Source: Octopus bimaculoides
Taxonomy: Eukaryota
DNA: 40,068 nucleotides
Reading direction: 5' to 3'
NCBI RefSeq assembly: GCF_001194135.2
Contig: NC_068984.1
Location: 23,381,398 to 23,421,465, forward strand
This document shows, piece by piece, positions 6,914-39,047 of the stretch (the first letter of the stretch is position 1; the number at the start of each line of letters is the position of its first letter). The notes below the pieces were generated by a model that was not told the origin of the DNA, searched no databases, and saw only the letters and a program-made list of their open reading frames with translations. The position numbers and the translations under genes were made by a program.

Positions 6914-6944
<31 letters not shown>

Positions 6945-7030
6945 TATCTTCTTTTTCTTCTTCTTCTTCCTCCTCCTTCTCCTCCTCCAACTCCACCTTC
7001 AACTTCTCCTGCTTGTCATTGTCATTATTG
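5990..7030. repeat. Compound (CTC/CTT/CAT/GCT)n trinucleotide array
   Basis: Directly visible. It is the source of the spurious 260-470 aa low-complexity ORFs. Confidence 0.95.
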
Positions 7031-7098
7031 ATTATGTGAGTGTCGAGAAAAGTGAGTGTGTCTATGTGTCTATGTATGTATGTGTATGAGTGGGTGTA

Positions 7099-7158
<60 letters not shown>

Positions 7159-17245: not shown

Positions 17246-17373
<128 letters not shown>

Positions 17374-17789
17374 CATTATGTTTGACAGAAGGGGTATTAA
17401 TTATATTGTGCGTGAGTATCAATTTAAAATAGCAATCTATGTATCATACTTATTGTTGGTAAGCCTAGTACTTATTCTATCGATCTCTTTTACTGAACCG
17501 CTAAGTTTATATATGTATATATGACATTGTTCTTAAAAGCTAGAGAATCGCAAGCGTAACTTCAATACACAAAAATATTAATTTAAGTGACTATTTGGAA
17601 GCATTTTTGTTGCTTTATTGTTATAACATTTAAAGATGGGAGTGTAAATCAACATTAAAGAATGATCAAAAAGGTGGCAGTCAATGATAATATGTCTCAG
17701 AATGTGTGGATATTGTTCTTCTTCTTGTTGTGTGTCTTCTTTTTTTAAAGTCGAGTGATAAGTGTAGATAAGGCAAAACATGTTTACAT

Positions 17790-18177
17790 TGTTGTTGTTG
17801 GTACTCCGTCGCTTACGACGTCGAGGGTTCCAGTTGATCCGATCAACGGAACAGCCTGCTCGTGAAAATTAACGTGCAAGTGGCTGAGCACTCCACACAC
17901 ACGTGTACCCTTAACGTAGTTCTCGTGATATTCAGCGTGGCACAGTGTGACAAGGCTGGTCCTTTGAAATACAGGTACAACAGAAACAGGAAGAAAGAAT
18001 GAGAGAAAGTTGTGGTGAAAGAGTACAGCAGGGTTCGCCACCATCCCCTGCCGGAGCCTCGTGGAGCTTTAGGTGTTTTCGCTCAATAAACACTCACAAC
18101 GCCCCGTCTGGGAATCGAAACCGCGATCCTATGACCGCGAGTCCGCTGCCCTAACCACTGGGCCATTGCGCCTCCAC
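17790..18177 (-). mobile_element. Full-length young tRNA-derived SINE with (CAA)n tail and 11-bp TSD
   Basis: A-box TGGCCCAGTGG and B-box GGTTTCGATTCC; tail CCAACAACAACA. The TSD CATGTTTACAT is at 17779-17789 and 18178-18188. Confidence 0.92.
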
Positions 18178-19899
18178 CATGTTTACATACAATTGAATAT
18201 TTTGAGTTCATATATACCGACTTGATAAAGTCAGTGATTCAGTCTTGTCTCACATCTATACGAGCTGGTCGAACAGGATACTGAAACTAGTGATGAAAGT
18301 GAATAAAACAGATTGGCTGAACGTATCACAGTGTTATTAATAATGTCTTATAAATAGAACAAAGGAATAATATAGCTGGAAGACAAGACTTGGAAGATAA
18401 CGGAAGATTAATGAGTGTTGCAGGATCCTGTAAAAATTACGACTATAACTGTCATAGCTGAATCGATCGATCAAATTATTCTGCAAGTAATTAACCCCAA
18501 ATGATTTGCATCTCAACAAACTTATTAAGAACTTCAGAAATACGAGACAAGAGAGTCTCTACACGATGACTTGACTTACTAGAAATAGCAACCAAATCTC
18601 TCTCAATTACTCTTAGGCTTTAAATAAGATAATAACACATTAGACACTTTTGCCAAAACTAACTAGAATCTTAAAATAGTTCAACTTTTGTCAGATCCTT
18701 GCAATTGGCCAGTACTTGATCAAGGCTGACCTAGGGCGAAACACTGCTAACAATTTCTGGGAAAGGAAAATTACACGAAAGAAACTAAATTTGACTTAGC
18801 AGTATTAGATTTAAAAGAAACGTTCTAGTGGTTTCGCCTCAAGTTAACTCTGAGCAGTTCCGAGGAGGTGCCTACACACTTTACTTTCTAACTAGTGGCA
18901 GCGACACCTATCATTTAATCTAGATTTTTGTTTCTATTGTTCCGATTCGGTTTTTGTCGGTCAGTGTTTAATAGTTGTTTTAGGATATAGATTTGTTGGG
19001 TGATTTTTAAAAAATTTATTCGTTTTCATGAAAATACTTGTAAGTGTAATGAAAATAAACCGTTGGAAGTTCTTTGCTTGTAATGGGCCTTCCCCTGATT
19101 TCAGAATATCGATTAGTTTGGCTTTTCACCAAAACTAAGGTATTTTTTACGTGTGAGAGAATAGTCGTTAAAGAGTTTGATCAACCATGTTCTAAGGCTA
19201 AGTTATTTAGCTCCGTGAAGATGTCAAGTTCCACTGCTTTTTCATTTTTTAAAATTATTTTCAAGTAAAAATCCATGAAAATCATAATTTGAGTTGCGGT
19301 CTGGATGATTTACCTTCAGATAATTTTTTTTCCTTTTCTCTCTTTATACTTCATTGATCTTTTCTTGCTAACTGCAATAATGTTATGGTATGTGCTCAAT
19401 GCTCGAGGATAATTACATAAGATTTGTATGAAGTGCCATGTTTTCTTCCCGTTTCTGCTAATTTTTATGCATTCGATTAAATCTTTTCAAACTTGTCACT
19501 GAATTGAGAAGGAATTCTCTAGAGGATTTTGCTATTCATAGTATTCTCTGATAATGAATCAATTTTAACTATTATTTCATATAACTCGGAGATTTCCTTT
19601 GTGACTCCAGTTGTGAATTTATTTTGACAGCCTCGGGCTATGTTTCCTTTTCATACATAGCAAACCAATGCGCAAATTTGCCATTCAGTCTTCCAAAAAT
19701 ACTCTGCTACTTGATTAGTATTTACTTTATCGATCCTGGAAAGATTAAAAGCAAAGTTGAACCCGGCAGCATTTGAAATCAGAATTTAAAGTAATAAAAG
19801 CCTAACGCAGTGTACTAATTCAGCTATCCACCACACTACTATAATTTAAGACGGTTTCTTACAATGGCGTAAGAGCACAAATTTCTAGGGATGGGTATT

Positions 19900-20120
19900 C
19901 TTTTATCTTCTCTTCTTTACCTCGCTTCAGTCCTTGGCGTGAGGCCAGGCTGAGACACCGCCTTCGAGGATCTTAGTCGAACAAATTGACAGCAATACTT
20001 TTTCTTTTTAAATCTGGTGCATATTCTGCCAGTTATTTTGCTGAAGCGTTAAGTTAGGAGGACCTAAACAAACGAAAACCGGTTGTCAGGCGGTGGTAAG
20101 GACAAAATACACACACACAC
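19900..20120 (-). mobile_element. SINE family A, 3' half, degraded
   Basis: Reverse complement of the tail region (ttagtcgaacaaattgac...accggttgtcaggcggtgg), followed by an expanded microsatellite. Confidence 0.65.
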
Positions 20121-20177
20121 ACATGCAAACGTACACGCACACACATATACATATATAAATATTATATATACATATAT

Positions 20178-20260
<83 letters not shown>

Positions 20261-20300
20261 TATATATACATACATACACATATATATATATATATACATA

Positions 20301-21050
20301 CAAAGGTTGGACAAAATAATGAAAACACCTTAAAATTTCAAACAAATGTATTTTAATATGAGATAGAACTGCCTTTGGCAGTAATTACAGCTTGAATTCT
20401 ACGAGGTATGGACTCATACAAAGTTTAAATTGTTTCCAAAGGAATTTTTGTCCATTCTTCAGCTAAAACCATCTCCAGTTCTTGTAGTGATGATGGTGGA
20501 GGATATCGACTCCTTACTTCTTTTTCTAAAATGCACCCTAAATGTTCAATATTATTGAAATCTGGGAACTGTGGTGGTCAGATAAGATGTTCGGCTTCAC
20601 TAGAATGTTCCTCGTGCCATTCAGTAACAACTTTAGCTATGTGAATTGGTGCATTATCATCCCGAAAGATTGTTTTCCTTCTGGAAACAGTTCCGCAACC
20701 ATAGGATGAATTTGATCAGATGAAATCTTTAAATAGTCTTGACTATTAATTCTGCCATGAAGGGAAACCATTGGGCCCACAGATTTCCAAGATATAGCTC
20801 CCCTCCAAGATATAGATCCTCCTACATGTTTAATAGTTGGAAGAAGGCAGTCTGGATCAAATGCTTCTTTTGGCTGTCTCCACACGTATACTCGGCCGGT
20901 GGTCGGAAATAAGGTAAAGGATGACTCGTCCGAGAAAATAACATTCTTCCACTGCTCTAGGGACCAATTCTGTAGGTTTTTACTCCACTCTAAACGCTTT
21001 GCAACGTTTGTTTTTTGAAAGTAGGGTTTTTCTGATTGCAGAAAACCCTA
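20301..21050 (-). mobile_element. Tc1-like (DD34E) transposon, one end only
   Basis: TA|CAAAGGTTGGACAAAATAATGAAAACACC TIR. Minus-strand translation: KRLEWSKNLQNWSLEQWKNVIFSDESSF...VWRQPKEAFDPDCL..KHVGG..DDNAPIH..PPQFPDFNNIEHL..RRIQAVITAKG, with frameshifts. Confidence 0.92.
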
Positions 21051-21529
21051 CTTTGTATATCTGTATGCATGCATGTATGTATGCATGCATGTATGTATGC
21101 ATGCTTGTATGTATGCATGCATGTTATCATTCAGTTTTATTTCAAGTTTTATTTCAAGATTTATTTCAAGATTTCTTGCCAATAAAGAGCTGCTTTCTAA
21201 CCGAGAACCAAGGCCCCTTCATCAGAATTTGAAACAACCATTGATTTGTGCATGTTTGCGTGTATATGTGTAATATTTGGAATCAGTACATGTGAAGATT
21301 TGCAGTTTTTGCTTTATGTATGTATTCCCCATCTGATGGTCACTTCTTGTCGTGGGGGGGGGGTGCTTGTATATATATATGTATGTATGTATGTATGCAT
21401 GTATGTATGTATCTATGTATGTATTATGAATGTATGTATTTATGTATGTATGTATGTATGTATGTATGCATGCATGCATGTATGTATGTATGTATGTATT
21501 ATGTATGTATGTATGCATGTATGTATGTA

Positions 21530-21566
<37 letters not shown>

Positions 21567-21705
21567 ATGTGTATGTGCATGCGTGTATCAGTCACTGTCC
21601 ATCTCCAGAGTAGTCATAAAGTTAGTTATTCTGTTTTAATAATATCTGTAGTATATTAAATTTCGTCAGCGTGCTTTTAACATATTTAATTACACATTTA
21701 GAACC

Positions 21706-21740
21706 CATAAATATCGTTTGTGTGGGTAATAAATTCAGTT
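21706..21740 (+). promoter_or_regulatory. Candidate core promoter (CATAAATA TATA variant plus TCAGTT initiator)
   Basis: CATAAATA (21706-21713) starts 31 nt upstream of the A of TCAGTT (21737), which is canonical spacing. A GTAAGT donor follows 74 nt later. Confidence 0.35.
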
Positions 21741-21810
21741 TCTATATTCCTTACAATAAATACAACTTCACTTGCTACCGTATCAAAGAAAAATCTCAAG
21801 ATATGCTAAT
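21737..21810 (+). other. Candidate first exon of the secreted-peptide gene
   Basis: Runs from the initiator to AAT|GTAAGT (21811). ATG at 21803 would splice in frame to the 32780 exon (ATG CTA AT|A AGC AAA ATG). Confidence 0.38.
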
Positions 21811-22489
21811 GTAAGTTAATTTGCTTGTTTATTCTCTATTTCGAAAGTTGGAAAACTCGAGTTTTGAAATAATTCTTCTTATAGAAATTTTACTGTCAGA
21901 CGTTCTAATGGCCTTGACGTTAAATTAGCTACTTTCATGGATTGTAAGAAAAGGGCTAGCACTGTGATTTTTGCCGTGCCTTGCAGAATTGACACGGTAG
22001 ATACGGTTGATGTATGTTGGGCTAGCAAGAAAGCATGAAAAGGCAGATAATTCAAGTAGAGAGCATTTCGAGAATAGAAGAACTAACGAAGTCTTCAGCA
22101 TGTTTGTTGAAGGATTGACCAAGGGCTTAGCAAAATGTTTGTGGAGTCAGATGATGTATGAATAATATACAGGCGGGAAGCTGGAAGGCAGCTGCAATAT
22201 GTGAACTTAAAGAACAGTTTCATAGCCTATATCTCAGAGGAACTAGGCGTTATCATATAAGCAGTGATTGATAGAAGGAATACCGTATGTTTATGTGAGT
22301 TTGCTGATTGTTGATGTGTGAATTTTTACCAATAATGAAACCAGTCATTTTTGGTGTTGGTAGTGCAATTAATGAAGTCAATGCACAAATACACGCACAC
22401 ATGCACACGTACACACATACATACACAAACGCACACACCTGTACATACATAAATACATATATACATTCAGTGACATTCTTGTAATCCCA

Positions 22490-23180
22490 AGGTGCAAATG
22501 CATGTGTAGACTATGTCATGTTTCTGTGGAAAACATTATGCATGTGATTAGCAGCTGTCCTAAAATATCGTCACGGTACTACCTCCCTATGCGGCACGAT
22601 GTTGTTGCTAAAACAATTTACAATGCCATCCGCAAAAAAGACTGTCCTGAAAATTCCTCTGTTAGAAAATTCCTCTGTTAGAAAATTCCTCTGTTAAGAA
22701 ATACATTCATAAACACCAACTCAAGGAATACTGATGAAATATTCCCATCAAAACTTCTGTCAAATGTAAACATAACAGGCCGGATGTTGTTATTTGGGAC
22801 AGAGGGGCAAAGGTATGCAGCTGACCATAGAGGTCAGCTGCACTGTAGATATAAATATCTCTTTGAAAATCAAAGTAAAAGAGGATATCTATGGGAAACT
22901 GCTTCGGAACCTTTAGCTTCTATATCCAGACTATGAATATATATTCATACCAATAATAATTGGAGCACTAGGTTTTATTAGCAAATTCTTAAAGGAGAAA
23001 GAGAAATCGACCGGCTAATTCGTACATTACATGTGCAATCTATGAGTGGAACAGTAAAAATATGCAAGACTTTTCTCAAGTTCCAAATGTAAATTTGTTT
23101 GTGTTAACTACATCCCAAAGATGGAGCCTTGTATCTTTGTTGGAAAACGGCTGCTTCCTCAGTGGAAGATTTATAATAAC
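22490..23180 (+). mobile_element. Non-LTR retrotransposon 3' end with CCHC and restriction-like endonuclease (R4-related), inactivated
   Basis: CRLCHVSVENIMHVISSC..RHDVVAK..NIPIKT..HNRPDVVIWD..IEVSC..KEDIYG..IIIGALG..ICKTFLKFQM*. In-frame stops; 16-bp unit x3 at 22649-22696. Confidence 0.88.
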
Positions 23181-23269
23181 TAAAAAAATAGAAGAGACAT
23201 ACATACATACAGTAGCGTGCAAATTCATCTGGACAGGATCAAATTTCATAATTATTTTCAGGTTTTGAT

Positions 23270-24290
23270 TAGAATTTGGTGCGAATTTTTGGATGAGTAT
23301 CGCGTTCATTCATACTGGTTTCTTTAATTTTCATCCATTCAATCATGATTTGATTTTTTAGATCATGTAGTTCTGTTGGGTCAATTTCTGTGTGACTTTC
23401 TTCATCTATTTGATTTTCATCTGCCTTAGTGTTTATGGTTGGTTCAGAGAATAGTTCACTTTGCCTATCAATTACATTAACTCTTTCAATCATTATTATA
23501 TTTTCATCAGCCCTCGGTTGGTCTATAATTATTTCCTCTGTAGTATCTTCTTTAGCTGCAGCTTCGTTCTTTTATCCTTTATTACTTGTTTAATTTGGTC
23601 AATCTCTATTTCAGTTAGTAATTTCTTTTTCATAATGTTTCTTCTGACGCTGGCAAGTTTGTTACTGTCTATGTAGGGTCTTACTTCGAGGTGTTTCTGT
23701 CTCCAGTTTAAGTAGGTTTGTACAGTATTAGATTTATTTGTGGAGAAACATATGGTATGATAGAAGGCCGTAAGAACTTCTTTATTATCTTCCCTAGACC
23801 ATTTTTCATTCTTTTTCTTTTGGTTATTTGATAATGAGCATGGCTGGCCATCTGTTGGAATATTCCGGTTGTAGGGTACTTCCAGCTCCTCTGTTTCGGG
23901 AAGATTTGAACCGGTAGCTGATTTTTCGTATTGAATCTGATTCATCATTCGAGTACGTGGCCCTTTGTAACCCGGTTGATGACCATTCCGGTTTGTATTT
24001 TGCTTTATTATCAGTGAGGCATGACGAGCTTCGACGTTGACATTAGGGGACGGATCTGTCTGTTTAGAGTTAATTTTTTGAGACAACACCGTCTCCGAGT
24101 TCTCTGCATGTAAACATTGCTCGTAACGTAGCTTCTTATGGCTAACATATCTATATCGAGTACATGGCCCTTTTCAATCCGGTCGACAACCAATCTGGTT
24201 TGTAATTTGCTTTGTTATCATTGAGGCATGACGAGCTTCGACGTTGATATTAGGAGACGGATTTGTCTGTTTAGGGTCAATTTTATTTTT
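23270..24290 (-). mobile_element. R4/Dong-type element, 5' ORF region
   Basis: KWSREDNKEVLTAFY..WRQK..NKLASVRRNIMKKKLLTEIEIDQIK and IMIEWMKIKETSMNER..PKI are typical R4-clade N-terminal segments. Truncated before the RT. Confidence 0.75.
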
Positions 24291-24839
24291 ATTATTATTG
24301 GGTGAGAGACTAGTGCATGCCATCAAAGTGACACTGGGGTAAAATATACGAAGCCCGTTATACCCATCATGACTACCCGTCTGATAAGGGTACACCAGGC
24401 ACATGCATCACAACCATATATGCGTGACATGATGATCTCATATCAAGATAAACAGCGCATGACCTCGTAGGTGGGACCCAGTTAGAATTTTCTTCAGGTC
24501 GAGTAGCCCATCCCGCTCAAAAGGTCCCTGAATAAGGTTTGTTTAAGGATGTTGAGCAAAACACCCATGTTTCCAAAGGTGAATTATTCAAACCCCAAGG
24601 AATTCCTCTCAACACATGACTATGATGCTCCCCCACTAATTCTTCTCGTGGTCAGAGCTGCACATATCGTCAGCTGCTAAAGAACACACCCAACTGGTTA
24701 TGGTCAAACAACTGACAAGCAAATCTGTGGTATTAAGCAGAATATTTGCTGTAACCCATCTTTTTATACCAAGACAAAACAATGCACATGATAACACTTC
24801 CAATCAATTAAGACCAGAAGCCATGAGAGCTACTGCCTG

Positions 24840-24840
<1 letters not shown>
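24290..24840 (-). mobile_element. Non-coding retroposon bounded by TAA repeats
   Basis: About 550 bp with no ORF or tRNA boxes. The minus strand ends ...CTCTCACCCAATAATAATAA, and (TAA)n lies upstream at 24841-24890. Confidence 0.5.
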
Positions 24841-24891
<51 letters not shown>

Positions 24892-25650
24892 GTTGTTGCT
24901 TTTTCTTCTTTCTTCAAATTTTCTTCCATTTCTCGCCGAGTGTTTTCCGTACACCTAGGGCAGAGAAACTCGTATGCATTCCCAGTTTACACACGCAAAT
25001 TCACAGGTAAAACATGNNNNNNNNNNNNNNNNNNNNNNNNNNNNNNNNNNNNNNNNNNNNNNNNNNNNNNNNNNNNNNNNNNNNNNNNNNNNNNNNNNNN
25101 NNNNNNNNNNNNNNNNNNNNNNNNNNNNNNNNNNNNNNNNNNNNNNNNNNNNNNNNNNNNNNNNNNNNNNNNNNNNNNNNNNNNNNNNNNNNNNNNNNNN
25201 NNNNNNNNNNNNNNNNNNNNNNNNNNNNNNNNNNNNNNNNNNNNNNNNNNNNNNNNNNNNNNNNNNNNNNNNNNNNNNNNNNNNNNNNNNNNNNNNNNNN
25301 NNNNNNNNNNNNNNNNNNNNNNAGTATGTACGGGGAAGTCCCAGAGAATCGATACATTTTCTCCCTCAGTCACAGCTTCAGGATGGTGTTTATACCATTT
25401 GTCAGCGGTTTTGATTTTATAATGTTGACATATTGTCCAGTGTAAATACTGGCCAACTCTGTCATGTCTTGCTTTATATTCTACAGGTGCTAAGACTCTA
25501 CACCCTGAGATTAGGTGGTCTATAGTTTCAATCGGATCGTTACAAAATCGGCATTTTGGGTCAGCTCCATTTTTTATCACATTGGCTTGGTAGTTCCGGG
25601 TTAATAAGTTTTGGTCTTGAGCAGCCAATATGAAACCTTCACCCTCTGCT
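24841..25650 (-). mobile_element. R4/Dong-type element, 3' portion with (TAA)n tail
   Basis: EGFILAAQDQNLLTRNY..CRFCNDPIETIDHLISGC..RHDRVGQYLHW..ILWDFPVHT, then a gap, a 3' UTR and the (TAA)n tail. Confidence 0.9.
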
Positions 25651-25797
25651 TCAGTAGTTTTATTTTTATAGCGTGCTTTCACTTCACTACCGAGCGCAGC
25701 TCTGTGTACTTTGGGTATGTGCTGTGGTTTACTGTGATGCTCTTATGGTTACTGTATTGAAAGTGTTTTGCGTAGGATGTGTGCAGTGCCCAGTAGT
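25640..25797 (-). mobile_element. Extreme 3' end of a second R4/Dong-type family
   Basis: LLGTAHILRKTLSIQ* (stop at 25749-25751) plus about 100 bp of 3' UTR, fused directly to the element at 24841-25650. Confidence 0.7.
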
Positions 25798-26859
25798 GGA
25801 AATATCCCTAGTATAAGTTTAAGTGATAAAAATCCTTTATTGAGGAGGAAGAGCATAAGGCACCATATGTGCCATCTTTAAAACAGAAAACGGAGTAAAA
25901 GCGCTACAAGAGAGTTAAAGTAGGTCTATGGGATGCTTTTAGCTGTTAGAAATAACAACCAAATTTCCTTTAAATAAACCTACCACGCTAAAAATGATGT
26001 TTAAAACCACATTAGATAATATAATATTAGATATACACTTGGCGGTCAATAAAAGAACAGGATAGTCATAGGTAGAATGCTTTCTATCATCAGCCAACTT
26101 TGGGCTAAACAACAAGAACGAAAAACTCTTCTGCAAACACTGCTTAAAAACAATATTGCATAGACAATTTGATTAAAAGTTCTTTCTCTCGCATTCCTAG
26201 CTGTCTACAAATAAATTCCATGTCAAATATTTACAGCAATCGGCATTCTATTACTGTTAATAAAAGATCAGCATTCTTTTACCGCCAATAAAAGATCCTC
26301 TATGTGGTCGACTGACTTGCCAGAAATAGCAGCCATGCATTCTTAAGCTCATACACTATCATTATTAATTTAGAAGGACTACTTGTATAATAGTTATTAG
26401 TAAACAATGTATGAAATGGTGAAAGCGGTTCATCACAACTAAAGCTCTTTCAATCATGTATTTGCTTGATGGGTGCTTACCAAGAGGCTAAACAACAACC
26501 ATATTTAACTTCTCCCATCAGACTATCTGTTCTCACTCTGTGCAAAGTAATCTACCCTACTGGTCAGGTACATGTAGCTCTTCAACATCAACCTCCAATG
26601 GTCACATTAAGGTCGGATCTACACGCATTCTACACTAACTGCCCTTCATTACATATAAAACCACTGTTTTAAAGTTCACTCGTGAATCAGCCGAAATAAC
26701 GAAGCTACTAATTGAAACAATCTATCTATGTCTACCCACAACTTACACATAATCAAAACCCGATGCCACCAAACATCCAAACTTTTTGGGCTGAAAACTT
26801 AAGTACCTCGTTGTATTCCACTGAAAACTTAGATTTACGTTGATCTATCATATTCATTA

Positions 26860-27000
26860 GCAATATAGGGACCAAGACCAGCAGTCTTTAAGGAAAGGGG
26901 TCAATCGTTACTATCGATCCCAGTACTTCACTGGTACTTCATGTTATCGACTCTGGAAAGAATGAAAGGCGAAGCTGGCCTTACCAAGATTTAAGCCAAA
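26860..27000 (-). mobile_element. SINE family C fragment, old
   Basis: atcgatcccagtac..ctggtactt..ttatcgac..gaaagaatgaaaggc matches the reverse complement of 35245-35310. Confidence 0.6.
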
Positions 27001-27249
27001 TGCTAGACAGTCTGAAGAAATACTTCGAGGCACTTTTCTGATGTCCGAACGATTCTGTCAATTCCTCGACCTAGAATAATAATAACAACTGGAACCGAAT
27101 GACTCTGATCATTTATAGATAGTCTAGTTACTATCGAACATATCTGCAGATTTATTAGCCAACACTGTATATTACGATAGATGTAAACAATATGTCTACA
27201 CAATGTTTGTTTTTTGTTACTCAGTTTTTAGTGAAGCTTATGATACTGA

Positions 27250-27750
27250 TATCAATGGATAGAAGATTGATTTGACGTCGAGGTTTAATGTTAAATATAC
27301 CTTTCATTTTTTATCGAGTATTATTAACTGTTCTGGAATCCATCTGCATAACAAGGGGAAAATTGGTTCGGCAAATTGTTTTAGAAAATAAATTACCGGA
27401 TTGAATTACTCAGAGAATAGTCAGCGACAGTGTTGTGCATATCAGTTACTTAGACTTCTATGTGGCTGGATATTAATAAAGGTTAAGATGGCGACAATAT
27501 GATATTTCAATAACATATACTTCCATGTAGTTGGATATTGATGAAAGTTACAATTCTCGGTTAGTTTCAACCCAAAACATTATGTGTGACATGTTTTGTT
27601 TGCTTGGTTGGAAATCGATCCAACATTTGCCAAATTGAGATAGTTATCTCAGTCGCTGCATCTACTTCAAGATGAATTGGAATGTTATTTGTCCTTAAGC
27701 ATTTGTGTAAGTCTTCTGTTTCGACGAAGAGTGAAATTTCAATAACTGTT
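27250..27750 (-). pseudogene. Ty3/gypsy-like aspartic protease remnant
   Basis: NNIPIHLEVDAATEITISIWQML..KHVTHNVLG resembles the L.LDT(A/G)SDIT..W..LG..HVARNASG segment. Many stops. Confidence 0.45.
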
Positions 27751-28559
27751 CAAATGAAAGTGTATAAAGATGCATGCAATATTCCCAAATGTTCAATAAT
27801 CAATCTAAAATATGAAGAGTTCATCGTATATTGAGCAACAAAACTGTCTAAATGACAAATCTATCTATTTTACAGTAGCGTGCAAATGTAAAACTGTTAA
27901 GTTCTGCAAAAACAAAAGTAGAAAAAGTAAGTGTGGTGATATTGCACTCTGTCTTGCCATTAATGCTATTTGTTGACCATTTATCTTATCAGAATAGATT
28001 GATAAATTGATACCAATTCATTGACGCCATTTCATGAGTGATTTGATTTCAACGAGTTATAAAGTCACGTTGACATCTAATATAAATACACCACATGAAT
28101 ATCTAATAAAAAGTAGATGAATACTTAGATGTTTAACAGTAGTAAGTAGTACAAATTGGTCGTGTGACTAACTATTAACCTGCCTGTGCTTTGTTGAAGG
28201 TAAACATTACCGGTCTTATCATAGCCAATATTTCAAATTCATATTTCGAGTACATTAATGCTAATGCTCAAGTTTCTAAAACAGCTTTTCTTTTATTTAT
28301 TTATTTTTAGAATTTAGTAAATGACATGAGAAAAAAATTTCAGCAGATAAACTGGACCTTAACTCTATGCACCCCACCCCATACACACACACACAAATGC
28401 ATTTTAGACATTTCACGAGTGCCATAACCCACATTCCCCACATCCATATGCAAAAATTGAATCTTGTTCATCAACATCGAAGAACCCGTCGATGTCGGGT
28501 CATCCACTTTCTCGGTATATCTATCAGCGGGAGTGAAAAGTATTCGATACAGCTGATGA

Positions 28560-30180
28560 AATAAATTATCTGGAAATAATCCTGTCAGTCACAAGGAAAG
28601 TGTCTTGGAAAAGTGTTTGGCGTAGACTCTGTATTGACAATACTGAAGCAGCATCGCCTGAAATTTATTGCAACCGAATATCTGCTAAATACACAGGAGA
28701 GGGAACACTTCCAGGGTGATGTTCTCCAAACATGTCTGAATTCAAAACAAAGTCCTTTATTGAACGAGGTTTAAAATGCATATAAATTTCCATTGCTTTA
28801 TGTAGTAAGTAACGCAAATTAACAACTTTGTAATTAAACTGGATGATCATACGTGTATAATGAATACAAGGCATTCACTCGCAGACAACTGACCACCTAT
28901 GACAGTAGCTTCTGAAATGCAGAAACTATTCGACTTCACTGAAACATCAGCTCCATATGATGCTACTGATTTCGAATTTCTCTAAATCAATCCTGGTTTT
29001 TCACAATAAATTATTGGAAGCTGTTAAGTAATCTAGAGTAATTCTTACAGAAAGTCTCTTCTCTTCAAGCTGTCTCCTTCAGATATGATGTTTCATCTCA
29101 GCTGATGTAATACAAAACAACCAGTTTCTGCGACTGAAAATTACAGACAGCAATAGTAAAGATGGTAGACCTTTCTTATGAATTGGTGAAGTAACAGAAT
29201 CGAGCGCAGCAAAGCATTTGCAAGCCTTTTCAAAGCCCAAAGCAGTTATTCCAATGATGTTTTTAAAAAACAAATTATATAACCGATCGAAAGTACAAGA
29301 ACACAGGAATATAAAAGTTTACGAGCACAACTGAATCTCTCCAATGAGGGGCTTTACGTAATGTATCTTATGTTAAAATCAATAAGTGCAATTCATAGCT
29401 TGGCATTTATATTCAAGGATGTCTGCGGGTCAGTTGCATAACTTCAACTTGTGATGGAAAGTCTGGTGGAATTGCCACTTTTTTTCAGTTGTCACCATTA
29501 AAAAACTTCAGGAGTGAAGAAAATTGTAGTAAATAATTCAGTCTCTCCAAAGATTCCCTGCCAATGCCAAGTGAGAGGAGAATTGGCATTGAATTTCATG
29601 AGTACTGTTCTGATTTCATGAAAGGCGTTAGTTATTAACTTACAAACAGAGTGATGTAAATCAAAGTAAGGATTTCGAGAAATTTCTTACTGATGTGGAC
29701 TGTTTGCTACTGACCAACTTTACATAAGATATTCAATTTTTTTTTTATAATTTTCTGCAGAGACTTTCAGTTGTGGACCTGGAACAAGAAATTCGGTATT
29801 TTATCAAAAATATTGAGTGTCTTGTCAAGAAACCACTCCTGGGTGTTTGGGAGGAAGCACTTTTCTCTAAACTCGTTGAAACAGATCTAAGATTGAAAAA
29901 TATATTCCTGTAGATGAAAGAAAAGAAGTATCAAATAAAATCAATTGGTTACAGCTCGCATAAGTTTTGGTACCATTCATGAACAAGTAATTTGAGTCTT
30001 AAAAAAGTTTTGTCCAGACGGTATGAACTTGCTGTTTATACGATTGTCTTCTGTAAGGTGAAGGCAACTGATGAGTATAGCTGTAATGTCCATGCAAATG
30101 TTTTGACATTAGATGTGGTAGAATAATAAAACAAAATCATTAGAGTACTGGAAAGTCATGTAAACAAATCTTATAAATCC
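28560..30180 (+). pseudogene. Heavily decayed hAT-like transposase
   Basis: Fragments appear in the expected order: QGD(G)SPNMS (28712), FHCF (about 28790), helical LKSISAIHSLAFIFKDV..LQLVMES, VDLEQEIRYF..W..LKNIF, and LA*VLVP. Many stops and frameshifts; no TIRs found. Confidence 0.42.
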
Positions 30181-30738
30181 TATGTGAACAGGGTGACTTC
30201 TCTTCTTTAAAGAGAAGAATTTTGTATGTAAACCGCAATCTACAAGCAGCGAACGTTTGATATCTTCATACCGTTTGTTAAGTCACCAGGAAGGCTTCTT
30301 CAACAAAATTCTACAACCACAAATTACTAAAAATTAGCGTTAGCCAACTTTTACCCAAAGCTGTAATCTTATATCATCTAAATAAAAAAAAACATACATT
30401 AAACATCCCCAATAAAAATGTTTTAAAGCATATTTGGAATAGAACAAAACAGCTGGAGAGAAAAACTAAGAGTTGCAAGGAAACTTACTGAACTTAAGTT
30501 TTCCTTCTAAGAATTATAGTATTTCATATTAATACAGTATTGATTAATAATTCACAGTAGTCGGTTTGTATCAGTCACTGTCAAACTTCGAATATCCATT
30601 GTGTTGTAAGATAACCCAAATAATTAATCCACAGATGTCATTGGACGTCACTTCGGATTAATATCTTTAAATATGCATCGATTATTTACTTTTTCAAAGT
30701 TAAAATTCATGTAATCTACGTGCAGTCTATTTGTTAAA

Positions 30739-30778
<40 letters not shown>

Positions 30779-31370
30779 NNNNNNNNNNNNNNNNNNNNNN
30801 NNNNNNNNNNNNNNNNNNNNNNNNNNNNNNNNNNNNNNNNNNNNNNNNNNNNNNNNNNNNNNNNNNNNNNNNNNNNNNNNNNNNNNNNNNNNNNNNNNNN
30901 NNNNNNNNNNNNNNNNNNNNNNNNNNNNNNNNNNNNNNNNNNNNNNNNNNNNNNNNNNNNNNNNNNNNNNNNNNNNNNNNNNNNNNNNNNNNNNNNNNNN
31001 NNNNNNNNNNNNNNNNNNNNNNNNNNNNNNNNNNNNNNNNNNNNNNNNNNNNNNNNNNNNNNNNNNNNNNNNNNNNNNNNNNNNNNNNNNNNNNNNNNNN
31101 NNNNNNNNNNNNNNNNNNNNNNNNNNNNNNNNNNNNNNNNNNNNNNNNNNNNNNNNNNNNNNNNNNNNNNNNNNNNNNNNNNNNNNNNNNNNNNNNNNNN
31201 NNNNNNNNNNNNNNNNNNNNNNNNNNNNNNNNNNNNNNNNNNNNNNNNNNNNNNNNNNNNNNNNNNNNNNNNNNNNNNNNNNNNNNNNNNNNNNNNNNNN
31301 NNNNNNNNNNNNNNNNNNNNNNNNNNNNNNNNNNNNNNNNNNNATATATATATATATATATATATATATA

Positions 31371-31560
31371 GGGAGAATTCACAGAAAAAAAAAAGACGAA
31401 GACAGGTGGTGTAGAAAACAGATGTATTAGTATAACGCTCGGGAAGTGAAAAAGTCTTTAACGTTTCGAGCCTACGCTCTTCCACAGGAAGGAACACAGA
31501 AAGAAACGTGGAGAGAAACACGGAGAGAAAAAAGAATGTGTAGTGGCTAGCGATCTATCG
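31371..31560 (-). mobile_element. Penelope-type terminal repeat with hammerhead-like motif, abutting (TA)n
   Basis: The minus strand reads CTGTGGA-A-GAGC-gtag-GCTC-GAAACGTTA, followed by a pyrimidine-rich tail into (TA)n. Confidence 0.55.
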
Positions 31561-32489
31561 TATATATGCATATATATACACACACACACAAAATATGGGG
31601 GTTTAGTGCACAGGTAATCTAAACGACTAGGTTCGCTGGGTAAGTGCTGTAACTGATTACCAGGGCTCCATGGTTATGGCCGAGACGGGAGTTATGGAAC
31701 CATTGTAGATTTCCAATATAGTGAATATATAATTGTTAAAGAGGCCAACAAATGTTAAGACAAAAACAAACATCTCAAGTCATATACGTTATTATTATTG
31801 GAAAAATTCAAAGTAGTACAACTGTTTCTAGGATATCCTAGTGTGTGGGATATTCCGTCATCGGAGACAAATAGGGAAAATGGGATGGGTATAGATGAAT
31901 GAAACGACGACATAGAGGACAGGAGAAAAGGAATAAGGAGATGAAGAAAAAGAAAGAGAAGAAAAAAGAAGCTTAAGAATACACAGTTTAACTTTCCGAT
32001 CGAGTAGATGTTAGTCCATAAGTCCTTAGGTGCAATCTTGTGTAAGTTAAAGTCTTAATAGTGTAAATATCGAGATACAAACGCGAACGTATAGACGTTT
32101 CGTAAGAGAATGGTAGCGGAGGTGGCTATTAAGGGGTAAAGAGAATGAAAAATAAATAAATAGTAAGAGCAGTAGAGAGAGTCAGGGAGGAAAGCAAGGG
32201 TTGGTATGAAGGATTAGATAAGGTATATATATATATATATATATATATNNNNNNNNNNNNNNNNNNNNNNNNNNNNNNNNNNNNNNNNNNNNNNNNNNNN
32301 NNNNNNNNNNNNNNNNNNNNNNNNNNNNNNNNNNNNNNNNNNNNNNNNNNNNNNNNNNNNNNNNNNNNNNNNNNNNNNNNNNNNNNNNNNNNNNNNNNNN
32401 NNNNNNNNNNNNNNNNNNNNNNNNNNNNNNNNNNNNNTATATATATATATATTATTAGCATCTCAACACTAACAATACTAAAAGATATT

Positions 32490-32590
32490 GACTTCAAGTT
32501 TTGGCACAAGGCCAGCAGGTCTGGTGGAGGGATAAGTCGATTACATCGACGCCAGTGTTCAACTGGTACTTATTTTATCGACCCCCAAAA
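32490..32590 (-). mobile_element. SINE family C, 3' fragment
   Basis: ttggcacaaggccagc..taagtcgattacatcgac..aactggtacttattttatcgacccc. Confidence 0.7.
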
Positions 32591-32786
32591 ATATAAGTTA
32601 TTATATTCAAGCCCAGCCTTTCAAAGGAATAAAGTGCATTTGAAATTTAGACTAAAAAAATATATTTTAAATAATGCAAATTAACGTAAATTTGAAAATT
32701 TGGTAGTAAAGTACTTACCCTCGTTACATTTATGTTTCCAATGCACCTTGTAAAATTGTATAAATATGTAATTTTACAGAAGCAAA

Positions 32787-32853
32787 ATGAAAATACTAAT
32801 CACAATGGCACTGCTTTTTATAATGACTGGAAACGAAATATGCGAGGCCCAAT
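32787..32853 (+). CDS. Signal-peptide exon of a small secreted peptide precursor (MKILITMALLFIMTGNEICEAQ plus phase-1 T)
   Basis: Acceptor ttttacAG (32778-79), start context gcaaaATG, a K followed by a hydrophobic core and a C-E-A cleavage-type motif, then donor T|GTAAGT at 32854. Confidence 0.75.
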
Positions 32854-33307
32854 GTAAGTAATTATTTAGTATATTTATTTGTCTCTCGAAAAAATGTTAT
32901 GAGAAATTCATTTTGGTAGTTTGGGAATGTGGACAACGTTTTGGCCTACTTAATCATGTCTTCTGTTAACATCTACCATATAAATTTCATTCTTTTTCCA
33001 CAATACATCTATACTTTTCATCTTATTTAATTGTTTCGAATAGGTGTTATGTTCTCTTTGTTTGTTACTTCAATGTTGCTTTAATTCTTTTAATTTTTTT
33101 TCCTTTTATTTTAGTCTCATTTCACTTCATTAATAAGGCCGATTATACTATACTTGCACACAAATTACAATTGTTTTATACGCACTTTAAGAATATTTCC
33201 GAGATTGAATAAGAGTCTCGAATGTCAACAAGAACGATATTTCTAGAAATAAAAATTTTAATTTAGGATTTAAGATAAAGCCCAACACTATGACAGAACC
33301 CATATAA

Positions 33308-33343
<36 letters not shown>

Positions 33344-33419
33344 NNNNNNNNNNNNNNNNNNNNNNNNNNNNNNNNNNNNNNNNNNNNNNNNNNNNNNNNN
33401 NNNNNNNNNNNNNNNNNNN

Positions 33420-33472
<53 letters not shown>

Positions 33473-33682
33473 GAAAATCTTACCGTGACGCAAAATTCCA
33501 TTATGCAAAAGGAATTTTTTGTATTTAGATCCATTCGAACAGCTTTTTCTTTTGCTTTTCAAGGACAAAAAAAGAACAGGCCTCATGACCTCTTTTATGC
33601 ATAGAAATATCAATTTCTATAAATACACAGAACATATTTGTACATAAAATACTTGAAGAGAAATACGTTCGAGAATAAATAA

Positions 33683-33708
33683 GAATCGTAATATCGATAT
33701 TACGATTC
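33683..33708. repeat. Perfect 26-bp palindrome GAATCGTAATATCGATATTACGATTC
   Basis: The sequence equals its own reverse complement, with no spacer. Confidence 0.95.
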
Positions 33709-33889
33709 ATAATATTAGATTTTATCTTCAATCTGAAATTTTGATTTCACTTTTTATACCTTCCAAACCAAGATTTTTAACATCTTTTTCTGCAAATCGT
33801 TAGACAAACTTTTGGGTTTTTTAATTACCATCATTCTTATTGCGTTGTGTCTGATCTTCGATCCATATACGCGAGAGCTGTCCATTTTA

Positions 33890-34250
33890 AGCACCTCGTT
33901 AGATCTATGTAAAGATAAGACACGAAAAGTTTACAGACTAACTTCCCAAGCTTCCGGCTCTTTATGTTCTAAGTTGATATCACCAAGACCGACTTTACCT
34001 TTCATAATTTTTGGGGTCGATGAAGTAGGTACCAGTCGAGCACTGGGGTTGATGTTATTGATTAAGTACCTTCCCCAAAAAATTTCAGGTCTTGCGCCTT
34101 CCAGCTCTTTACTTTCTAAGCTCAAGTTGACTTTTCTTTTCATCCTTTTGGAGTCAATGAAATAAGTACTAGTCGAGCATTGGGGTCGATAAACAAATTT
34201 CTTCCACCCTCAAAATTGCTGGCCTTCTCTCAAGATAGGAAAGAGATTAT
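33890..34250 (+). mobile_element. Two tandem old SINE family C bodies
   Basis: The block gactt..ctttcat..ttt(g/t)ggg(g/a)gtc(g/a)atgaa..agtac..gtcgagca(c/t)tggggt occurs twice (about 33990-34060 and 34125-34190). Confidence 0.6.
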
Positions 34251-34484
34251 ATACTCTAAAACACGACCGTATTATTTCTACAAAAATGAATAAAAATAAA
34301 CGTGAATAGTAAATGTAAACAAATGAAAATGGATAGTAATATATTCCGATTTTAATAATTTGTTTGATTTTGTTTCAATTTTTTGTTGGTTATGTTATTG
34401 CTAAGATTGGTCTGGAAATATATGAACAACCGTGTATGTTTGTTCGTTCGGATAATCAAAGTTTTCAGGCACAATATAGAATAT

Positions 34485-34805
34485 ATATAAACGAAATTGT
34501 TACAAACACACATATGGACGCACATACTTACATATAAGCACGAACACATAAGTGCGTGCACACATATGAGCGTGCACACATACGAGCTTGCACACACTCA
34601 CATGCTCATACCGAACAGTTTCAAATGAACGCCAAATCATACATTCAAAATAAATGGAAGTGGAGAGACAAGTTACTGAAGAGATTGCAAGAGTGCAATG
34701 AAATTATTTAACAAAAAACTATATACTGTTTATAAATTAATAAAGGACTGAACCAGTGCGTGTGTTTATTACCGGCATAATGCCTCTCCCAAGGTTTAAT
34801 TGTAT
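34485..34805 (+). repeat. Local repeat copy 1 (left arm of outer inverted repeat)
   Basis: Near-identical reverse complement at 36648-36981; partial direct copy at 37596-37857. Confidence 0.92.
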
Positions 34806-35148
34806 TTCTTTCAACACACGTATCCACATCAAGAATCTTGCACACGAAATACACATACGAAATAGAATATTCGTTACTTCAGAAATTAGTATTTTTCATT
34901 AGGTGGGTTTTTACAGAATGACTTAGAAGATAAGCTGATCATACATGTTGTTAGAGTTAATTATATGGGCTATTTATTTAGGAGGAAGAGAGGGTAAATA
35001 TGCTGTGTTATTAAGTCCAGAGTATGTAAATAACTTGATGCTTTTGCTTTTGACCATGACACATAAACACTTCCTTCCTCACCCAGGAGTTCAAACAATA
35101 AATTAATAGTGTGCATTTACTTACATACATACCTATGTATATAGATAC

Positions 35149-35379
35149 GCGGCGAGCTGGCAGAAACGTTAGCACGCCGGGCGAAATGCTTAGCGGCATT
35201 TCGTCTGCCGCTACGTTCTGAGTTCAAATTCCGCGGAGGTCGACTTTGCCTTTCACCCTTTCGGGGTCGATTAAATAAGTACCAGTTACGAACTGGGGTC
35301 GATATAATCGACTTAATCCGTTTGTCTGTCCTTGTTTGTCCCCTCTGTGTGTAGCCCCTTGTGGGTAGTAAAGAAATAA
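35149..35379 (+). mobile_element. SINE family C, full length
   Basis: GGCGAGCTGGCAGAAACGTTAG head, GAGTTCAAATTCC B-box-like motif, central GCCTTTCA.CCTTTCGGGGTCGA..AAATAAGTACC block and AAAGAAATAA tail. Confidence 0.88.
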
Positions 35380-35579
35380 CACATACACACGCATACACAT
35401 ACATACAAATACACATACATACTTAAACACACACACACAAACACACAAGTTATACAAGGACAGTATAGCACTCAACACAAGTTACATGTAAACTCATTTG
35501 CATAAGTGAACATCTATATATAGTTTTTTATGCGTGTATGTGCGCGCGTGTGTACATGATGTGTGTATGAGGAAGGAGG

Positions 35580-35941
35580 AAGGACCCTTCATCAGTTGTC
35601 GGCTGTCTATCTACTCCTCATTTCGGGCATCCAACGACAATATGAGTCTTCAAAGACAATTGCTCCCATAAATTCTAAAATAAAATTTAGGATTTATGGA
35701 GGGTCAAAGTTAGGAACAAAAACATGACAGTGGAGACATATATATTAATTATTATTTTTTAATTAAACGTGATGCATCCATTTCCAAGTTAGTTTACCTT
35801 CACCTTTTTGATGTGATTCTCTACTCTATACAGTATTTTACCTCCATCCTTCTCTAATTCCATTTTTCCCCTCCTCCCTCCTTCACCGTTTTCTACCTCT
35901 CTTTCTCTCTCTCTCTTTACCCCCTTTCTCGTTCTCTCTCG

Positions 35942-35977
<36 letters not shown>

Positions 35978-36357
35978 CTTTACCCCTTTTCTCTTTCTCT
36001 CTCTCTCTCGTCGCTCAAACGTGACCATCGTCCATCTTTCTTTTCTTCAAATGACCATCTATCTTTTCCTTCACGGATGTGTTTTCTCTCTCTTTTCTAT
36101 CTTTTGTCTTTTCAAAAAAAATTTTCTCCCAGCGTTCACTATTTTCCTCTCATTCTGGTCTGACGACCCTCCATGTTTGTTTTCGTTCGGTTTCCTTGTG
36201 TCTCGATTGTCATGTTTTTATTCCCAACTTTGACCTCCCATAAATCCTAAATTTTATTTTAGAATTTATGGGAGCAACTGTCTTTGAAGACTCAAATTGT
36301 CGTTGAATGCTCGAAATGAGGAGTAGATAGACAGCCGACAACTGATGAAGGATCCTT
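35580..36357. repeat. Inner inverted repeat, arms 35580-35738 and 36199-36357
   Basis: Arms of about 160 bp at roughly 90% identity by eye, around a (CT)n-rich spacer. Confidence 0.9.
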
Positions 36358-36647
36358 TCTCTGTGTTTACTTGTCTTGTTTTCCATTTTTTCTTGTTGTT
36401 CATGTATTTCACTCGTTTTTCCTTCGTTTGCTTACGTATTTCATGTTATTTTCACTGTTGGTGACGTCCTGTACACTTATATGCATGTGTGTATGTGTGT
36501 ATATATATATATATGTGTGTGTGCATATATGTACATATATGTATATGTATAGTGAGTTCAAACAAGAGAAACGACAAAAAAAACCAACAAAAAGCAACAA
36601 CGCGAGGACGTGATACAGATATTGTGTTACTGTATATGTATACATAT

Positions 36648-37003
36648 ATACAATTAAACCTTGGGAGAGGCATTATGCCGGTAATAAACACACGCACTGG
36701 TTCAGTCCTTTATTAATTTATATAGTTTTTTGTTAAATTATTTCATTGCACTCTTGCAATCTCTTCAGTAACTTGTCTCTCCACTTCCATTTATTTTGAA
36801 TGTATGATCTGGCGTTGTTTTGGCGTTGTTTTGGCGTTGTTTCGAAACTGTTTGGTATGACCATGTGAATGTGTGCAAGCTCGTATGTGTGCACGCTCAT
36901 ATGTGTGCACGCACTTATGTGTTCGTGCTTATATGTAAGTATGTGCGTCCATATGTGTGTTTGTAACAATTTCGTTTATATCAGATCAGATAGAGACTTT
37001 TTA
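36648..37003 (-). repeat. Local repeat copy 2 (inverted relative to copies 1 and 3)
   Basis: Reverse complement of 34485-34805 and of 37596-37857; it runs up to the gap edge. Confidence 0.92.
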
Positions 37004-37595
37004 NNNNNNNNNNNNNNNNNNNNNNNNNNNNNNNNNNNNNNNNNNNNNNNNNNNNNNNNNNNNNNNNNNNNNNNNNNNNNNNNNNNNNNNNNNNNNNNNN
37101 NNNNNNNNNNNNNNNNNNNNNNNNNNNNNNNNNNNNNNNNNNNNNNNNNNNNNNNNNNNNNNNNNNNNNNNNNNNNNNNNNNNNNNNNNNNNNNNNNNNN
37201 NNNNNNNNNNNNNNNNNNNNNNNNNNNNNNNNNNNNNNNNNNNNNNNNNNNNNNNNNNNNNNNNNNNNNNNNNNNNNNNNNNNNNNNNNNNNNNNNNNNN
37301 NNNNNNNNNNNNNNNNNNNNNNNNNNNNNNNNNNNNNNNNNNNNNNNNNNNNNNNNNNNNNNNNNNNNNNNNNNNNNNNNNNNNNNNNNNNNNNNNNNNN
37401 NNNNNNNNNNNNNNNNNNNNNNNNNNNNNNNNNNNNNNNNNNNNNNNNNNNNNNNNNNNNNNNNNNNNNNNNNNNNNNNNNNNNNNNNNNNNNNNNNNNN
37501 NNNNNNNNNNNNNNNNNNNNNNNNNNNNNNNNNNNNNNNNNNNTGCATGTGTTGTTCACACATATGATGCGGAATATGAACGTAAATAAATTAAT

Positions 37596-37857
37596 TAAAA
37601 AGTCTCTATCTGATCTGATATAAACGAAATTGTTACAAACACACATATGAACGCACATACTTACATATAAGCACGAACACATAAGTGCGTGCACACATAT
37701 GAGCGTGCACACATACGAGCTTGCACACACTCACATGCTCATACCAAACAGTTTCGAAATAACGCCAAAACAACGCCAAAACAACGCCAGATCATACATT
37801 CAAAATAAATGGAAGTGGAGAGACAAGTTACTGAAGAGATTGCAAGAGTGCAATGAA
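37596..37857 (+). repeat. Local repeat copy 3
   Basis: Shares the 11-bp (AACGCCAAAAC) expansion and AAAAGTCTCTATCTGATCTG with copy 2. Confidence 0.92.
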
Positions 37858-38503
37858 CGAAAGGGATTAAAATTTTGATATTCCGTATCAAAGGTTCCGA
37901 AAAGAATAGGCGGAAAAACAGAGCTTGAGACAAGAAGACAGTTTTGACCAATCGGAATTCTGTTTACATAATCAGTTTGATCGGCCACCTTCTTCTGTCG
38001 GTTGAGTAAAGTGTCATGCAAGCTGATGTTTATTGGTAATCAAACTTATTTTGCAACACTTGTGTGTATTTATCAGCTTTGTTTTTGTTGATAAGAATTA
38101 TCACCAACTTTTCCTGTGATCATGATCTGAGAAGACATAAAGAAGTATGCTAAAGATCAGACATAATCTCTTGTGGGCAAGAAATGTAAAATAAAGTTTA
38201 TAATAAACATAAACACTTTGTAATTTAGTAACTTTCAATGTGATACCTGTTAAACAGAAATTATTCTTATTTAATGAAAATTTAATAAAATCTAATCATA
38301 AGTAAAGTAAATTATGCTAAATACAACTAAATTGAAAACCTTTTTCTCTTGGCCATACTGGCAATTCTGAAAACTTTTGGATACGAATTTTACACGAGTA
38401 GAAGCTTTTTTTAAACAATTTTTTTTTCCTGAAAATCATATATATATATAACGTGATGTGAATTTCAGTGTAGTTCTAAAATGTTTAATGTTTTTAATTG
38501 CAG

Positions 38504-38616
38504 ACAGATATAATGGGGCATGTATCACTGAGTGCCTAAAACAATCGAAGAATAAAGTTGACTCGAGCTATCTCCACGTATGCTCGGATGCGTGCAGACA
38601 TCGTATATTCGTGTAG
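38504..38616 (+). CDS. Terminal coding exon: (Y)RYNGACITECLKQSKNKVDSSYLHVCSDACRHRIFV*
   Basis: Acceptor tttttaattgcAG (38502-03). The only open frame is phase 1, matching the 32853 donor. It encodes two C-x3-C motifs and ends in a TAG TGA double stop. Confidence 0.72.
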
Positions 38617-38753
38617 TGATTGCATTCAAGTCATTTTGAATACAACTAGAAAAATGAAACCAGAAACATCACTCCTGAGCACGTCTAATCCCCTTAAATT
38701 AAATAAGAAAGAAACAATATTATTTGTGAATACATCCGATGTATTTTAACGGA

Positions 38754-38790
38754 AATAAAGCATTTCAAATACATTCTTTCTTGTGATTCT
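38754..38790 (+). terminator. Polyadenylation signal and downstream element
   Basis: AATAAA at 38754-59, CA at 38772-73, then U/GU-rich ttctttcttgtgattcttttc. Confidence 0.55.
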
Positions 38791-38935
38791 TTTCAACTTT
38801 TGGCACAGGGCCAGAAATTTCGGCGAGGGAGTAAGGCAAAGTCGACCTCGGCGGAATTTGAACTCAGAACGTAGCGACGAGCGAAATACTGCTAAGCATT
38901 TTGCCTGGCGTGCTAACGATTCTTCTAGGCACCCT
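38790..38935 (-). mobile_element. SINE family C, internally deleted
   Basis: ggcaaagtcgacctcggcggaatttgaactcagaacgtagcg..gcgtgctaacg is the reverse complement of the 35149 head. Confidence 0.85.
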
Positions 38936-38940
38936 GCCTT

Positions 38941-39047
38941 GAGAAGAAGAAGAAGAAGAAGAAGAAGTAGAAGAAGAAGAAGAAGAAGAAGAAGAAGAAG
39001 AAGAAGAAGAAGAAGAAGAAGAAGAAGAAGAAGAAGAAGAAGAAGAA
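38941..39047 (+). repeat. (GAA)n microsatellite
   Basis: Directly visible, with one GTA interruption. Confidence 0.97.

Follow-up and report, generated by a model that had tools for sequence, protein, structure and literature searches.

The cysteine motif Xn-C-X3-C-Xn-C-X3-C-Xn, with C1-C4/C2-C3 disulfide bonds, defines the alpha-hairpinins and is common to the scorpion kappa-hefutoxins and OmTx and to the cone-snail peptides flf14a-c and vil14a (PMC7191063). HelaTx1 and the conotoxin pl14a have the same cystine-stabilized alpha/alpha (CS-alpha/alpha) fold (PMC7262511), and plant alpha-hairpinins are cut from vicilin or multi-module precursors (PMC7191063). Here, we analyzed a stretch of 40,068 nucleotides (nt) of Octopus bimaculoides DNA (contig NC_068984.1, positions 23,381,398 to 23,421,465 of the forward strand), hereafter the window, which carries a spliced reading frame with the same arrangement of cysteines. 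This frame has strong signals and encodes a protein of 59 to 64 amino acids (aa) that combines a basic, hydrophobic N-terminus with a twin CX3C motif; its gene model is already public though uncharacterized. We lean, with caution, towards a real, lineage-restricted secreted twin-CX3C hairpin peptide, which would be like CS-alpha/alpha peptides in fold and not in ancestry. A preliminary description of the window, made from the letters alone, had held that the cysteine spacing defines helix-loop-helix folds such as those of plant alpha-hairpinins and scorpion toxins, and the literature agrees with this and adds the cone-snail peptides (PMC7191063, PMC7262511).

Exon structure and the public gene model

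Coding exon 1 occupies positions 32780-32853 of the plus strand, with its ATG at 32787-32789, seven bases past the acceptor aattttacAG|A at 32779/32780. Its frame, MKILITMALLFIMTGNEICEAQ followed by T32853, is open throughout to 32853 and ends at a phase-1 donor, GTAAGT at 32854; it encodes a signal-like peptide, MKILITMALLFIMTGNEICEA, and then Q and the first base of a Y codon. After an intron of nominally 5650 nt (32854-38503), exon 2 begins at the acceptor tttttaattgCAG|A at 38503/38504, and its coding part (38504-38619, plus strand) supplies the AC that completes Y, followed by RYNGACITECLKQSKNKVDSSYLHVCSDACRHRIFV and then TAG TGA. Only the phase-1 frame of this exon is open, the remaining two hitting stops within 3-12 codons. 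The frame ends in ...CRHRIFV at a double stop (TAG 38614-38616, TGA 38617-38619), and the probable 3' untranslated region (38620-38780, plus strand) holds ATTAAA at 38698, AATAAA at 38754 and a T-rich stretch after it. On direct reading, the exon pair, the phase-1 junction, the stop and the poly(A) signal are all where the preliminary description had placed them, and the spliced translation gives exactly the 59-aa precursor that it proposed.

A search of 5.8 billion proteins with the 59-aa sequence returned a sole match, the 64-aa UniProt entry A0A0L8IAX1 (A0A0L8IAX1_OCTBM, Octopus bimaculoides, "Uncharacterized protein"), with 100 % identity and 100 % coverage (expectation value, E = 5e-33). 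The entry consists of MRRSK plus the 59 aa; its exon 1/exon 2 junction and its stop are identical to those of the spliced frame, and the exon 1 translation is identical to its residues 3-28. It carries no functional annotation, and a literature search for the accession or the peptide sequence found no paper. The gene had been presented as hidden, which does not hold, an identical protein being public already. Its absence from the list of open reading frames (ORFs) is correct as such, only since a list of this kind cannot see spliced genes; public annotation has the gene.

The additional MRRSK needs an arginine codon split as xx|A at 32779/32780, and an upstream exon must end in ATG-Arg-(AG or CG) before a GT. 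A single site upstream within the window qualifies, ATGAGACG|GTAAGT at 16762-16769 on the plus strand, which reads ATG AGA CG before its donor and would encode M, R and two bases of CGA (R), with A32780 completing the codon. The analytic chance expectation of such sites in 29.3 kb is 0.0008 with a strong donor and 0.14 with any GT donor. We conclude that the public model probably has three coding exons (16762-16769, 32780-32853 and 38504-38616) over about 22 kb, the coordinates of the putative mini-exon 0 having been derived from the protein sequence and not from annotation coordinates. The upstream mini-exon would also account for the acceptor that had been seen ahead of exon 1. GTAAGT serves as the donor of exon 0 as well as exon 1, and each of the two acceptors is a pyrimidine-rich CAG. 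The first ATG (16762) lies in a weak context, with C at -3, and the second in-frame ATG (32787) in a strong one, with A at -3; either start leads to an identical mature peptide. As a promoter of exon 1, TATAAATA at 32760 was rejected, since it is too near the ATG and transcription would start at or after the ATG; for the same reason, exon 1 fits an internal position.

The predicted peptide and its closest counterparts

As judged by eye, the N-terminus comprises the n-region MRRSKMK, an 11-residue hydrophobic core (ILITMALLFIM) and a C-E-A|Q site that obeys the -3/-1 rule. MRRSKMK would make a textbook basic n-region, in keeping with the signal-like N-terminus described earlier. An alternative cleavage, MTG|N, is weaker; the mature peptide would then keep a fifth Cys. 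For the 38-aa mature form, a charge of +2.9 and an isoelectric point of 8.85 were computed, in agreement with the net charge of about +3 previously estimated, and the proposed Cys spacing, C-x3-C-x15-C-x3-C, is present in the translation. Neither dibasic processing sites nor a C-terminal Gly for amidation can be read in the sequence, and the peptide is therefore probably used whole.

Structure prediction with AlphaFold2 was run on single sequences, without an alignment. The full precursor was modeled as one long helix, spanning the signal peptide and the first Cys pair, that a loop connects to a second helix, with a predicted local distance difference test score (pLDDT) of 65.6. The 36-aa exon-2 peptide (pLDDT 82.4) was modeled as a helix at residues 2-13, a loop at 14-19 and a helix at 20-31, and its Cys 6/10 and 26/30 fall within the two predicted helices. 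The two helices that the preliminary description had expected were thus recovered, at the level of prediction. When compared with the Protein Data Bank (PDB) by Foldseek, the best match had a nonsignificant E of 1.5, with template-modeling (TM) scores of about 0.55-0.57; the top match was nigellin-1.1, and further matches included the Ara h 1 leader, luffin P1 and the Jug r 2 leader, all four being plant alpha-hairpinin or vicilin-buried peptides.

Among the described systems, the cone-snail framework-14 peptides (flf14a-c, vil14a and pl14a) are likewise secreted mollusc peptides with a C-x3-C-xn-C-x3-C motif and a helix-loop-helix, which is only predicted for the octopus peptide. Known C1-C4/C2-C3 bonds, venom-duct expression and activity on voltage-gated potassium channels and nicotinic acetylcholine receptors are features of the conotoxins, which have 22-27 residues in contrast to 38 here, and no sequence similarity was detected between them. 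The scorpion kappa-KTx peptides (kappa-hefutoxin, OmTx and HelaTx1) resemble the octopus product in Cys motif, predicted fold and basic/aromatic surface. However, these are shorter peptides from arthropods that block Kv1 weakly, and no homology was found among PDB sequences, so that the likeness would be convergent. The nearest PDB folds are those of plant alpha-hairpinins and vicilin-buried peptides (nigellin-1.1, luffin P1, the Ara h 1 and Jug r 2 leaders, and EcAMP1), which share the Cys motif and a length of about 35-47 aa, whereas the Foldseek E is not significant, the kingdom is another and sequence similarity is absent. The precursors also differ, with a signal peptide and a single module in the octopus compared with vicilin or multi-module precursors in plants. 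Overall, the translation carries the Cys motif of CS-alpha/alpha peptides and alpha-hairpinins, while sequence, length, precursor or Cys number sets it apart from the homologous families of plant alpha-hairpinins, kappa-KTx and Conus framework-14 peptides, small Tim proteins and attractin. The fold would be like that of CS-alpha/alpha peptides, but the protein cannot be shown to belong to any of the homologous families among them.

A plausible course for the secreted hairpin peptide can be outlined. The precursor would enter the endoplasmic reticulum (ER) cotranslationally, its N-terminal basic and hydrophobic segment acting as a cleavable signal peptide. Cleavage, most likely after CEA, would release a 38-aa mature peptide with a charge of about +3 and an N-terminal Gln, which may cyclize. 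In the ER, the two CX3C pairs would staple two antiparallel helices through C29-C53 and C33-C49 (59-aa numbering), producing a rigid cystine-stabilized alpha/alpha hairpin. Purely by analogy, this hairpin may show aromatic and basic side chains (Tyr, Arg and Lys) to an extracellular target such as a channel, a receptor, a protease or a microbial surface. Toxin, host-defense and signaling or reproductive roles are candidates among which we offer no ranking, and any function named would be a guess from analogy. The peptide may be a new, convergent addition to a structural kind that is already known. A further-reaching proposal, which we put forward only tentatively and consider doubtful, is that it might be the first cephalopod secreted cystine-stabilized alpha/alpha hairpin, possibly a recently born Octopus gene that reached the scaffold independently of cone-snail, scorpion and plant defense peptides, with real extracellular bioactivity, for instance as a channel modulator, an antimicrobial or a signal. 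If expressed, the gene would place cephalopods among the lineages in which the twin-CX3C helical hairpin serves as a secreted scaffold, and would provide both a compact orphan gene for studying the origin of new disulfide-stapled peptides and a small, easily synthesized candidate ligand. If not expressed, it would be an example of a plausible-looking orphan model unchallenged in the public proteome.

Chance background, database searches and rival explanations

The chance background was evaluated by scanning both strands for first-exon candidates (an ATG with an uncharged hydrophobic core, followed 15-35 codons downstream by a GTRAGT donor) and terminal-exon candidates (a pyrimidine-rich YAG acceptor and a frame of 25-60 codons to a stop). 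Four signal-like first-exon candidates occur in the window, 3 of which derive from TG/TA low-complexity DNA, along with 238 terminal-exon candidates, 29 of which contain four or more Cys. A single one of the 238, exon 2 described here, has exactly four Cys in a twin-CX3C arrangement; it lies downstream of the only nonrepetitive first-exon candidate and shares its strand and phase. In order-3 Markov simulations, a compatible pair appeared in 0 of 120, and the looser pattern of a signal-like exon with a phase-matched terminal exon of even Cys number in 10 % of the same 120. The specific pattern is rare and the generic pattern is not. No paralogous exons were detected within the window by tblastn or blastn, and the two exons are unique and not copies of local repeats. 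An origin of the second CX3C from a TG/TA microsatellite (frames of the VCMHACMY type) was also considered and rejected, since tblastn gave only 10-aa matches of 50 % identity at E of ~1 and there was no similarity at the DNA level.

Next, relatives were sought in public databases. A HMMER scan of 1.84 billion representative proteins and a word-indexed search of the 5.8 billion proteins each retrieved only the protein itself. In Pfam, the precursor had no match, and the mature part gave only a subthreshold iron-sulfur (Fe-S) domain (E = 0.08), taken as chance; PDB sequences gave only a trefoil factor (E = 0.17) with Cys not aligned, also taken as chance. At E up to 10, the PDB sequence search matched no kappa-KTx, conotoxin, alpha-hairpinin, attractin or small Tim chain. 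The preliminary description had recognized no homologue, and protein, Pfam and PDB sequence searches likewise reveal none. For so short a peptide, an E of ≤ 0.001 in so large a library takes roughly at least 40 bits, and only fairly close relatives would register. As a control query, a 275-aa transposon-like ORF of the window found one European Nucleotide Archive (ENA) match and no octopus entries; hence, octopus ORFs that lack annotation are absent from the databases, and being an orphan is informative for annotated proteomes only.

Several of these observations weigh against a real secreted hairpin peptide. No orthologue or paralogue was present among the 5.8 billion or the 1.84 billion proteins, which counts against it because toxin and antimicrobial genes usually form families, and a single-copy orphan fits a venom-family expectation least well. 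A look-up for independent contigs or transcripts with the 64-aa product and two genomic exon-2 ORFs found none on record. Gene predictors pick strong splice sites by construction, and the splice sites are therefore not independent evidence; exon 0, in addition, sits in low-complexity sequence. The chance criteria were fixed after the finding was known, and the 10 % rate of the generic pattern matters because the scan covered many windows. None of the Foldseek matches is significant, and a single-sequence AlphaFold2 model of 36 aa gives weak evidence for the predicted fold. Moreover, the order, continuity and orientation of the exon 2 block across the second intronic gap (37004-37543) cannot be proven from the window alone.

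The main rival explanation is that the model is spurious or not translated, with fortuitous frames lying between splice-like sites in AT-rich, repeat-rich DNA whose transcription is at noise level or nil and yields no peptide. We regard this as unlikely, if well short of far-fetched. Such an explanation would suit an orphan without orthologue or paralogue that is merely 64 aa long, whose exon 0 has 8 coding nucleotides in low-complexity DNA and whose encoding contig is not on record. It would also suit the frequency of Cys-rich frames that TG/TA-rich repeats produce (the 29 of 238 terminal-exon candidates), the signal exon with an even-Cys exon in a tenth of simulated windows, and the selection of striking windows from the many that were scanned. 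However, the annotation pipeline and a tool-less reader independently reached the same junction by using quite different features; neither signal peptides nor twin CX3C motifs play a part in what the pipeline selects. No other exon candidate of the window has the exact twin CX3C and the pair was absent from all simulations; furthermore, the predicted helix-loop-helix has its Cys in register, and the poly(A) signal stands at a sensible distance past the stop.

The remaining explanations accept a translated product and differ in its nature. Aplysia attractin is a disulfide-stapled helical water-borne pheromone, and a real secreted octopus peptide might, in parallel to it, act as a hormone, pheromone or reproductive signal rather than in venom or defense. 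Proteins of reproduction and chemical communication are typically fast-evolving orphans in single copy, as the octopus protein is, its predicted structure is a helical hairpin, and ITECLKQS loosely recalls the attractin segment IEECKTS, a resemblance offered only as a lead. Nevertheless, attractin was not matched in Pfam or PDB sequences at E up to 10, the octopus peptide has 4 Cys and not 6, and it lacks both dibasic processing sites and a C-terminal amidation Gly; this role is improbable in our view. It is very improbable that the frame belongs to another isoform or forms the start of a longer protein, in which exon 2 would splice on or exon 1 would join another acceptor. There is a GT at 38578 inside exon 2, which the preliminary description had named as a possible donor (GTATGC) that would undo its proposal, and sequence past 40068 falls outside the window; yet the TAG that closes the frame is also the stop of the public model, GTATGC makes a weak donor, the frame runs into a double stop with AATAAA beyond it, and tblastn of the window revealed no further related exon. 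The mitochondrial small Tims (Tim8/9/10/13) are twin CX3C proteins with a spacer of 11-16 residues and a helical hairpin, and had been left out of the earlier motif comparison. The 15-residue spacer found here is within their range, and a divergent small Tim-like protein of the intermembrane space was evaluated on that ground. Mitochondrial import of small Tims involves no cleavable hydrophobic signal, and these proteins have about 80-100 aa, in contrast to the hydrophobic signal-like N-terminus and the much shorter mature length seen here; as neither a zf-Tim10_DDP match in Pfam at E up to 10 nor a PDB sequence match was obtained, we give this explanation the least credence of all.

Introns, assembly gaps and repeats

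Intron 1 (16770-32779, plus strand, ~16 kb) contains three assembly gaps (25017-25322, 30779-31343 and 32249-32437) and retroelement fragments. Intron 2 (32854-38503, plus strand) contains two gaps, a (GT)n microsatellite, a SINE-like (short interspersed nuclear element-like) copy and an inverted repeat. Both of its gaps, 33344-33419 and 37004-37543, are intronic and crossed by no coding frame, and the exon phases are therefore independent of gap length. The former interrupts the (GT)n microsatellite, with GT runs at each flank, and looks like an unread simple repeat. The latter, of 540 N, is bracketed by the inverted repeat, which spans 36742-37857 (no strand assigned) with 262-nt arms at 36742-37003 and 37596-37857 that are 98 % complementary; it represents a true palindrome or else an artifact of fold-back assembly. 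The nominal length of 5650 nt for intron 2 is unreliable.

Three SINE-like copies, with segments 86-88 % identical, accompany the gene: one at 32490-32600, ~180 bp 5' of exon 1; one at 35162-35315 on the minus strand, within intron 2; and one at 38790-38945, ~30 bp past AATAAA and just beyond the probable 3' untranslated region. Rfam and tRNA scans of the window detected no RNA gene, including at these copies. In intron 1, a minus-strand ORF at 25323-25682, abutting the gap at 25017-25322, has a zf-RVT motif (E = 2e-4, below the Pfam cutoff) and resembles the C-terminal portion of a reverse transcriptase from a retroelement; a basic ORF of 186 aa without a Pfam match at 23529-24089 (minus strand), near this fragment, may be part of the same retroelement.

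Additional ORFs resembling mobile elements lie upstream of the mini-exon. An ORF of 133 aa at 3139-3540 (plus strand) weakly matches the N-terminal part of the piggyBac-type DDE_Tnp_1_7 domain (E = 7.5e-5, at the Pfam cutoff) and is probably a transposon fragment. The 275-aa ORF that served as the control query (13774-14601, minus strand) has no Pfam domain, and neither has its one relative, the 474-aa ENA protein (32 % identity, 96 % coverage, E = 3e-31); it may be an uncharacterized mobile-element protein.

Long purine-rich (GAA/GAG)n tracts occupy 5797-7203 and 38945-39000 and give rise to pseudo-ORFs, up to 468 aa long and rich in Glu/Lys or in Ser/Leu/Phe, which are low-complexity artifacts of the ORF list and not genes. 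Degenerate TGTA/TGTG/TGCA repeats at 16520-16760, 17068-17376, 21246-21659 and 36869-36940 translate to periodic C-x-C and C-x3-C patterns, such as YVCMYVCM. Because such repeats inflate the number of Cys-rich ORFs, Cys-motif scans of this genome need a background correction.

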